Sequence record: OR538032.1
Strand: one strand, 5' to 3'
DNA length: 64,000 nt
Shown here: in pieces, positions 25,851 through 26,938 of the stretch
Numbering within the stretch: position 1 is the first letter of the stretch
Layout of the letters: every line of letters starts with the position of its first letter
Position numbers and translations under genes: made by a program
The notes under the pieces: generated by a model
Told to the model about the DNA's origin: nothing
What the model saw: the letters and a program-made list of their open reading frames with translations, nothing else
The model's database searches: none

Positions 25851-26372
25851 TTATTTAACTTTGAACTTCAAATTACGCCAGTCAAAGTTTCGTTTGTTCT
25901 TTGTGTTGTAGAACGTGCCCCAATCAATAGCAATCGGACAGTTCTTACTACCTACACGAGCGATAAATACATCGTGAGTCTCGCTGTAACGCTCTCTAAG
26001 CTCCTTTAAACGCTTATCGTAGTTAGCGATATACTCAGCACACGCTTTGTTGTAAGCTGCTTTAGAGAAGCGTTCGTTACTCGAAAATACATTACCTAGA
26101 TAAGGTCGAATAACACGAACTCGTTCTTTAGACCAACCCATACTAAAGCTGTTTTCAATCTCACCTGAGATTTCACCAGTCTTCTTACATCTAGCAAGAA
26201 TGACCCAGCAACGTTCACGCCGAAAATCTTTTCGTACATACACGTTAACGTGCTTGTCAATGTACTCTTGATAACGAGCGTTATACTCAGCACGCAGTTT
26301 ATTGCGCACTTCAGGCGACATTGCAGCTCGTTCTTCTTTCGAAAACGCTTGTGCAAATTTCAATGGTTTCAT
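25851..26372 (-). CDS. basic hypothetical protein (173 aa)
   Basis: GAGGA RBS before ATG 26372. Confidence 0.7.
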   Translation of the reverse strand: MKPLKFAQAFSKEERAAMSPEVRNKLRAEYNARYQEYIDKHVNVYVRKDFRRERCWVILARCKKTGEISGEIENSFSMGWSKERVRVIRPYLGNVFSSNERFSKAAYNKACAEYIANYDKRLKELRERYSETHDVFIARVGSKNCPIAIDWGTFYNTKNKRNFDWRNLKFKVK

Positions 26373-26385
26373 TATAATTTCCTCT

Positions 26386-26625
26386 TGGCGCCGCTCGTGT
26401 GAATCGAACACACGTCAAACACAACACCTCGTCCACCCAATTAGAGTTTCGAAGTAAGAGCTAATCAGCATTTCGGAGCAATCGAGCGTTATTTCTACGA
26501 GTGAGCTTTCGACAACTCACACGCACTTTCTACTCGGTCCCAGTGATTCGGTACCAACGCAGGTTGCGAACCTACGTCTGCACTAATGTTGGGAAAACAC
26601 TGCGTATTGTACACCAGTTAGCGGC
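26386..26625 (-). ncRNA. 240-nt RNA with a tmRNA-like tRNA-like domain
   Basis: GCCGCT/AGCGGC acceptor, G73-CCA, GAC-GTGTG-TTCGATT-CACAC, P2-like ACAATAC/GTGTTGT. Confidence 0.7.
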
Positions 26626-26859: not shown

Positions 26860-26938
26860 AATGTTTTCCTCGTGTAGTTGATAATGTGTATACTACACGT
26901 TGATGAAACGCATGTCAACAACTTTTTCAAATTATTTT

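Follow-up and report, generated by a model that had tools for sequence, protein, structure and literature searches.

A conserved, structured RNA gene with a tRNA-like handle in the tRNA cluster of KVP40-like vibriophages

The tRNA cluster of KVP40-type vibriophages contains a conserved, structured RNA gene that was previously unannotated. We describe it from a window of 64,000 nucleotides (nt), the whole stretch of DNA analyzed (record OR538032.1), which belongs to a KVP40-type Vibrio phage (across the query, 100% identity with phage PG216 and 98% with KVP40). The gene specifies a predicted 240-nt RNA on the minus strand and occupies the gap between a 76-amino-acid (aa) gene (stop codon at 26631-26629) and a 173-aa gene (ATG at 26372-26370). 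Its full-length CM match scores 265.9 bits, and literature searches found no description of it. The two ends of the RNA come together as a tRNA-like handle, and a body of three nested helical domains (A, B, and E) with invariant loops is carried on a long helix, P2. The features are as follows, with positions in the window.

26890..26918, minus strand: sigma-70-like promoter match TTGACA-17-TAGTAT (consensus scan, 10/12; a match of this kind is no proof of function)
26386..26625, minus strand: whole RNA, 240 nt, with G1 at 26625 and the 3' CCA at 26388-26386 (from the sequence and the CM match)
26620..26625, minus strand: acceptor stem, 5' strand GCCGCU; 6/6 pairs, 100% paired, 4/6 compensatory
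26610..26619, minus strand: linker AACUGGUGUA in place of a D arm; stemless, with an invariant GG (26615-26614)
26600..26609, minus strand: P2 helix, 5' strand, nt 17-26; pairs with 26424-26416 over 9 bp (100% paired, 3 compensatory)
26538..26594, minus strand: domain A, nt 32-88; 19 pairs, 12 compensatory
26483..26536, minus strand: domain B, nt 90-143; basal helix B1 and a hairpin with 10/11 pairs compensatory
26437..26468, minus strand: domain E, nt 158-189; helix CUGAUUAG/CUAAUUGG
26416..26424, minus strand: P2 helix, 3' strand, nt 202-210
26396..26414, minus strand: T arm; stem of 5-6 bp and loop UUCGAUU, 5/6 pairs compensatory
26386..26395, minus strand: acceptor 3' strand AGCGGC (26395-26390), discriminator G (26389), and encoded CCA (26388-26386)
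26370..26385, minus strand: Shine-Dalgarno AGAGG and ATG (26372-26370) of the next gene, beginning one base past the CCA
25851..26372, minus strand: downstream gene, 173 aa, PHROG 15953, function not assigned; syntenic neighbor of the RNA
25204-25184: terminator-like hairpin

Evidence that this interval encodes a conserved RNA fold comes from its relatives. BLAST placed the interval in 49 phage records, all of them from Vibrio phages. We distinguished 12 copies in ∼8 lineages, down to ∼70% identity and all KVP40/nt-1-like: the carriers are KVP40, phi-pp2, ValKK3/phi-ST2/VH7D, F86, D482/6E35, 1.081.O, QD01, VS1, and nt-1, and the twelfth distinct copy comes from two ENA metagenome contigs (L016 and L017) that hold it in identical form. 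In motif scans of IMG/VR, JGI metagenome, and GTDB genome sequences, the only matches were KVP40, VH7D, and chance hits in coding DNA, and a family-model search yielded nothing new beyond the known copies. Apart from the two ENA contigs, the family appears to be restricted to KVP40/nt-1-like vibriophages. Folded as a single sequence, the RNA has a minimum free energy z-score of -2.8 relative to shuffles, and for 11 sequences RNAalifold predicted a nested fold in which 36 pairs are compensatory. In a refined count over 62 pairs and 678 pair cells from a model-based alignment of 11 distinct sequences, which was fitted to the tested fold and hence favors it, standard pairs filled 94.7% of the cells, compared with 37 to 43% when the 3' partners were slid by 1 to 3 columns. 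Changes on both sides were seen in 37/62 pairs, none of 500 shuffles reached the observed value in any of five measures, and an independent MAFFT alignment gave the same helices. All of the handle helices, and likewise those of domains A and B, are supported by covariation.

The acceptor stem, T arm, and linker make up the handle, and P2 leaves its elbow. The original prediction, made from the letters of the window, had named most of these parts, and several stand as described: the 6-bp acceptor GCCGCU/AGCGGC is present on the minus strand; the P2-like helix ACAAUAC/GUGUUGU is present and lengthens to 9 bp with one bulged U; the D-loop-like linker (ACUGGUGUA in the window RNA) has no D stem and has an invariant GG; G3-U70 is absent, pair 3-70 being an invariant C-G across the lineages; and the CCA directly abuts AGAGGAAAUUAUA-AUG of the next gene, which starts 14 nt after it. 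Other predicted parts are true of the window but do not extend to the family. G73 with an encoded CCA is one of them: five lineages have G as the discriminator, two have A, and three have C, and CCA is encoded in the KVP40/ValKK3 clade only, with ACA or ACG following the discriminator in the other lineages. Likewise, the GAC immediately 5' of the T arm (GUGUG-UUCGAUU-CACAC in the window) is clade specific, being GAA or GUA elsewhere, and the interior hairpin loop UUCGCAA is UUAAUUA in F86 and 1.081.O.

What the lineages do share is the geometry of a tRNA end. The acceptor sequence itself covaries, as in GCCGCU/AGCGGC in the window versus GGCGGG/CCCGCC in QD01, and pairs 2-71, 5-68, and 6-67 (alignment columns 2/242, 6/239, and 7/238) differ between lineages. 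Nucleotides A(-2), U(-1) (26626), and G1 are invariant, as are G53-C61 of the T arm and G11, G12, and G14 of the linker, for which no pairing partner was found. The T loop reads GUUCGAUUC, or GUUCGAGUC in 1.081.O. In all lineages, the acceptor and T stems add up to 12 stacked layers (computed for six lineages and counted by eye on the alignment for the other five), split as 6+6, as 7+5, or with one or two noncanonical junction layers. The RNA has no tRNA cloverleaf, lacking both a D stem and an anticodon arm, and the tRNA searches of ARAGORN and Rfam were silent on it; at gathering scores, no Rfam family and no ARAGORN call fell on the 240-nt RNA. The family model, in turn, matches ordinary tRNAs at 15 to 18 bits via the handle alone.

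A separate tRNA-like minihelix of 47 nt lies outside the tRNA cluster at 18113-18067 (minus strand), between a stop codon and the next ribosome-binding site. It consists of an acceptor GGGAGAU/GUCUCCC and a T arm with loop UUCGAUU and has no other arms; the family model scores it weakly, at 12.2 bits. It may be an RNase P punctuation site.

Within the body, invariant loops sit beside helices that change sequence freely. Domain A is closed by UCCCA/UGGGA, which becomes CCCGA/UCGGG in F86; it has the invariant internal loops ACAUUA and GAAUCAC and ends in a freely covarying distal hairpin of 7 to 8 bp with a 7-nt loop. Domain B has the A-rich internal loops AGAAA and GAAAUAA and the invariant hairpin loop GUCGAA (26513-26508), and its basal helix B1 is kept in all lineages with differing sequences (CGAG/CUCG, UUGUC/GACAA, GGGG/CCCC, and UAGAG/CUUUA). 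Domain E presents a nearly invariant 16-nt loop, CUCUUACUUCGAAACU (26460-26445), on a helix of 8 bp (nt 158-165 with 182-189); this helix is fully paired (100%) and shows two compensatory and two one-sided changes. RNAalifold proposed an alternative fold for this domain, consisting of two small hairpins with zero compensatory changes in the most conserved stretch. The energies of the two folds lie within a few kcal/mol of each other, and a conformational switch in domain E is possible on these modeled folds. One candidate pairing of a loop with downstream bases is made of invariant bases only; the consensus fold otherwise consists of nested domains. When the window was searched for the complement of the 16-nt loop, the only other match had 3 mismatches, which is within chance expectation.

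The RNA is set in a cluster of tRNA genes on the minus strand, of which ARAGORN counts 27 and Rfam 30. A tRNA-Met gene lies directly upstream of the RNA in F86, D482, 1.081.O, and an ENA contig, with a spacing of 15 nt in L016. The sigma-70-like match lies upstream of both the 76-aa gene and the RNA, and with the terminator-like hairpin at 25204-25184, the 240-nt RNA would arise within a polycistronic transcript and would need excision. The KVP40 RefSeq record has no RNA feature in the interval, and the start of KVP40.0317 has been extended into it. Starts for the downstream protein are called inside the RNA in L001 (3289-3849, KVP40.0317), L002 (1661-2278, F86_0307), and L016 (3001-3633), at GTG or ATG codons 5' of the true ATG; in phi-pp2 and phi-ST2, the protein begins at the ATG 3' of the RNA. 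N-termini of this protein that reach into the RNA are very likely artifacts. Upstream of the cluster, a gene 57B homologue (L016 624-1079 and L001 310-765) carries the RefSeq label RNA ligase and has a Pfam Acb1 domain (anti-CBASS nuclease) among its precomputed matches. KVP40-type phages have also been reported, in the phi-pp2 paper, to encode a tRNA nucleotidyltransferase (PMC3468402).

Five tRNA genes of the window carry insertions in or after the anticodon loop (27640-27528, 27517-27399, 25845-25733, ∼27777-27655, and ∼28164-28041, minus strand). Three of them score 50 to 52 bits in Rfam, ARAGORN misses them, and three are labeled tRNA-Pseudo in KVP40. The genes are conserved in F86, D482, 1.081.O, phi-ST2, and a distant metagenome contig (L018 438-556). 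Their insertions share a covarying hairpin of ∼7 bp with a GNNA tetraloop (GAUA, GUUA, GACA, or GUCA), followed by a YNGCA motif, and these tRNAs may be spliced or may be kept as decoys. A module common to the insertions and the 240-nt RNA was considered and rejected, the GCU-GAUU-AGC likeness being too weak. A further gene at 21853-21782 (minus strand) resembles tRNA-Ala(UGC), with G3-U70, A73, and CCA and with three mismatched lower-acceptor pairs; it scores 44.9 bits in Rfam, drew no ARAGORN call, and would be the set's only alanine tRNA.

The junction at the 3' end, comprising the RNA end, AGAGG, a spacer, and ATG, is kept in all lineages, including those in which a different 69-aa gene lies downstream. 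The 173-aa protein has only 8 homologues, and a PDB fold search with its AlphaFold2 model, which is confident (pLDDT of 84), gave no match (best E = 1.4); the protein therefore offers no functional clue. A Colicin_D identity, raised by a weak Pfam match (E = 0.068), was rejected because the fold search with this confident model did not support it. Distant homologues of the protein (L018 and L019; 42 to 45% identity) have other structured leaders upstream. The L018 leader (720-856) retains GCAGUGU..AACAU together with a T arm and the 3' strand of an acceptor, which lie ahead of the same ribosome-binding site; a 5' acceptor strand was looked for in it and was not found. The L019 leader (1234-1420) is ∼190 nt long and is closed by GUGGGG/CCCCAC, without a T loop. 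The family model matched neither leader.

Several explanations compete for this RNA. One, put forward in the original prediction, is that it is a chargeable RNA or an SmpB or ribosome-rescue mimic: the handle would be charged with an amino acid other than alanine and, together with SmpB or a phage factor, would enter the ribosome, resulting in ribosome rescue, tagging or blocking, or sequestration of SmpB. The structural part of that prediction was right. The handle lacks alanine identity and has the topology of a tmRNA-style tRNA-like domain (acceptor, T arm, and a GG linker that forms no D stem), a long helix departs 1 to 2 nt before the T stem as in tmRNA, CCA is encoded in the window RNA, and the fold, whose loss in relatives had been named beforehand as grounds for refutation, is conserved with covariation. 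The functional part did not find support. ARAGORN found no tmRNA, and at E < 10, Rfam gave a lone 13-bit fragment match to the beta-proteobacterial tmRNA model that covers the T arm and the 3' acceptor strand and overruns into the 3' flank, so that neither of the proposed checks detects the RNA as tmRNA. The invariant C3-G70 is accompanied by a discriminator that may be G, A, or C and by varying acceptor pairs, with no conserved identity set, and neither CCA nor the GAC motif is conserved; because the discriminator and pairs 2-71, 5-68, and 6-67 vary, a conserved aminoacylation identity is unlikely. The near-invariant 16-nt loop is readable in principle, in short frames that start at GCU (GUU in 1.081.O) and that have a stop triplet just upstream in all lineages (by inspection), but these frames vary in length and end (ALTSKL, ALTSKLLSG, VLTSKP, and 15 residues in F86), and their variable sites are nonsynonymous. 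Translation of all frames of the 12 copies found no conserved internal frame with a resume codon, tag, and stop, which bears out the statement in the same prediction that there is no typical tag, and no tmRNA-type pseudoknots were found in the consensus fold. Since alanine identity, tag frame, and recognition by detectors all fail, membership in the tmRNA class fails on three tested defining features. At the level of sequence, nothing shows a tmRNA-like working of the RNA, and we consider a charged handle acting in the ribosome very unlikely.

The conservation might also reflect a role in cis, with the tRNA-like end serving as a punctuation or processing site in the mRNA and the body controlling the stability or translation of the next gene. 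We regard this as unlikely, but it retains weight because the junction is so strikingly conserved, even before the different 69-aa gene. The T arm and 3' acceptor strand of L018, whose protein is 43% identical to the downstream protein, precede the same ribosome-binding site, the minihelix at 18113-18067 likewise lies 5' of a ribosome-binding site, and CUCUU of the invariant loop can pair with the AAGAG stretch of the Shine-Dalgarno sequence. However, the Shine-Dalgarno sequence is unpaired with the body in minimum-energy folds of the RNA plus trailer, for both the window and QD01; in the QD01 clade, the Shine-Dalgarno sequence is GGAGAA and the loop shows no compensating change; and a covarying three-domain body of 180 nt far exceeds the needs of a processing site. 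It is highly improbable that the conservation is that of a small protein gene, namely an 18-codon frame running from AUG 26471 to UGA 26415 and giving MLISSYFETLIGWTRCCV. Its AUG is invariant, or GUG in two lineages, and third positions hold 6/8 variable columns of codons 2 to 12 (counted by eye), but these third positions coincide exactly with the covarying partners in helix E, and 20 consecutive bases of the region are invariant at all codon positions. Moreover, a 1-nt insertion shifts the frame in F86, the stop is absent in 1.081.O, QD01, VS1, and nt-1, where the frame continues through the T arm, and no Shine-Dalgarno sequence precedes the AUG. Finally, the interval could be an intron-interrupted tRNA gene or a decayed tRNA pseudogene without function, to which we assign the slightest of probabilities. 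The RNA does sit among tRNA genes, five of its neighbors bear insertions (44 to 54 nt in the three aligned by Rfam), and its linker, GGUGUA, looks like the first part of the D arm in two of these insertion-bearing genes. Yet excising everything inside P2 still leaves neither a D stem nor an anticodon arm, no Intron_gpI match to indicate a group I intron appeared even at E < 10, and compensatory evolution with invariant loops over ∼30% divergence is not expected of a pseudogene.

The explanation that we favor, with confidence about evenly balanced, combines tRNA-like processing via the handle with a stable RNA that acts through contacts of its invariant loops. The 240-nt RNA would be transcribed within the polycistronic message of the tRNA cluster, and its ends would fold so that the acceptor stacks on the T arm in 12 layers and the T loop and GG linker form a tRNA-type elbow. 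In tRNA, RNase P and the CCA-adding enzyme read features of this type, namely, the stack, T loop, GG, and U(-1). The match of the 12-layer stack, T loop, invariant GG, and U(-1) to what these enzymes recognize supports tRNA-like processing, as does the location in a tRNA array, where the RNA would be treated like any other member. Host RNase P would thus cut at G1 because of the tRNA-like ends, and the 3' end would be trimmed and would bear a CCA that is encoded in the KVP40 clade and added by the CCA-adding enzyme elsewhere. The cuts that free the RNA would also separate the upstream from the downstream cistron. Once freed, the RNA would work through its body, three domains on P2, in which invariant loops and internal loops would bind a protein or RNA partner; GUCGAA, CUCUUACUUCGAAACU, and the internal loops of domain A, which are invariant or nearly so beside covarying stems, point to such contact surfaces. 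The handle alone would suffice as a processing signal, which leaves room for a cis role of the body.

To an extension of this proposal, in which the RNA would function as a tRNA mimic and interact with the machinery of translation or of tRNA surveillance, perhaps with the two folds of domain E as a switch, we give a low probability. In one variant, the handle would be charged and would bring the body to the ribosome in a tmRNA-like manner, with a non-alanine identity that changes between lineages; in the other, the RNA and the five neighboring insertion-bearing tRNA genes would serve together as decoys against host tRNA-cutting defenses.

The KVP40 genome has served as a phage reference since 2003, and a 240-nt gene has been missing from its annotation, with several gene callers extending the start of the next protein into the RNA. 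The analysis adds a new, well-supported RNA family with a tRNA-like handle, and if the handle does more than steer processing, the family would represent a new viral use of tRNA mimicry.

Several known RNAs share parts of this architecture. Like tmRNA (SsrA), the vibriophage RNA has an acceptor and T arm, a linker that bears GG but forms no D stem, a long helix that departs from the elbow, and a large insert that separates the two halves; unlike tmRNA, it has no G3-U70, conserved A73, or conserved tag frame, its consensus fold shows no ring of pseudoknots, and its acceptor/T stack is 6+6 in several lineages rather than 7+5. The bacterial Y-RNA-like YrlA is also a noncoding RNA with a tRNA-mimicking module, but the ends of YrlA form a Ro-binding stem and its tRNA-like part is internal; the Rfam YrlA model gave no match on 26386-26625, with weak matches to neighboring true tRNAs only. 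In mascRNA/MALAT1 and the tRNA-miRNA transcripts of gammaherpesvirus 68, a nondecoding tRNA-like fold recruits tRNA-processing enzymes and sets RNA ends. The tRNA-like handle may be an analogous processing signal, although these eukaryotic and animal-virus examples have a complete cloverleaf-like fold and the body of the vibriophage RNA is inserted within the handle rather than placed beside it.

The stable RNAs C and D of phage T4, whose role is not known (PMC3014915), offer a further comparison. Their genes, too, lie within a T4-type phage's tRNA cluster, in the same neighborhood, where genes 1, 57A, and 57B are followed by the tRNAs. Close to the 3' end of RNA C (species 1 RNA) lies a canonical T arm, CCGGG-UUCGAAU-CCCGG, and its interior folds into additional hairpins rather than a cloverleaf, so that a terminal stem, a T arm, and a non-cloverleaf interior are common to both. 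The T4 RNAs are shorter (139 and 119 nt versus 240 nt), and the body of the vibriophage RNA comprises three domains on a long P2. The family model gave no match to T4 70908-71171, i.e., no detectable homology to RNAs C and D. By this comparison, the 240-nt RNA would be a larger analogue of T4 RNA C and not a homologue, and RNAs C and D, a 50-year-old puzzle, would gain a larger, richly covarying counterpart in which the invariant loops are clear targets for mutation.
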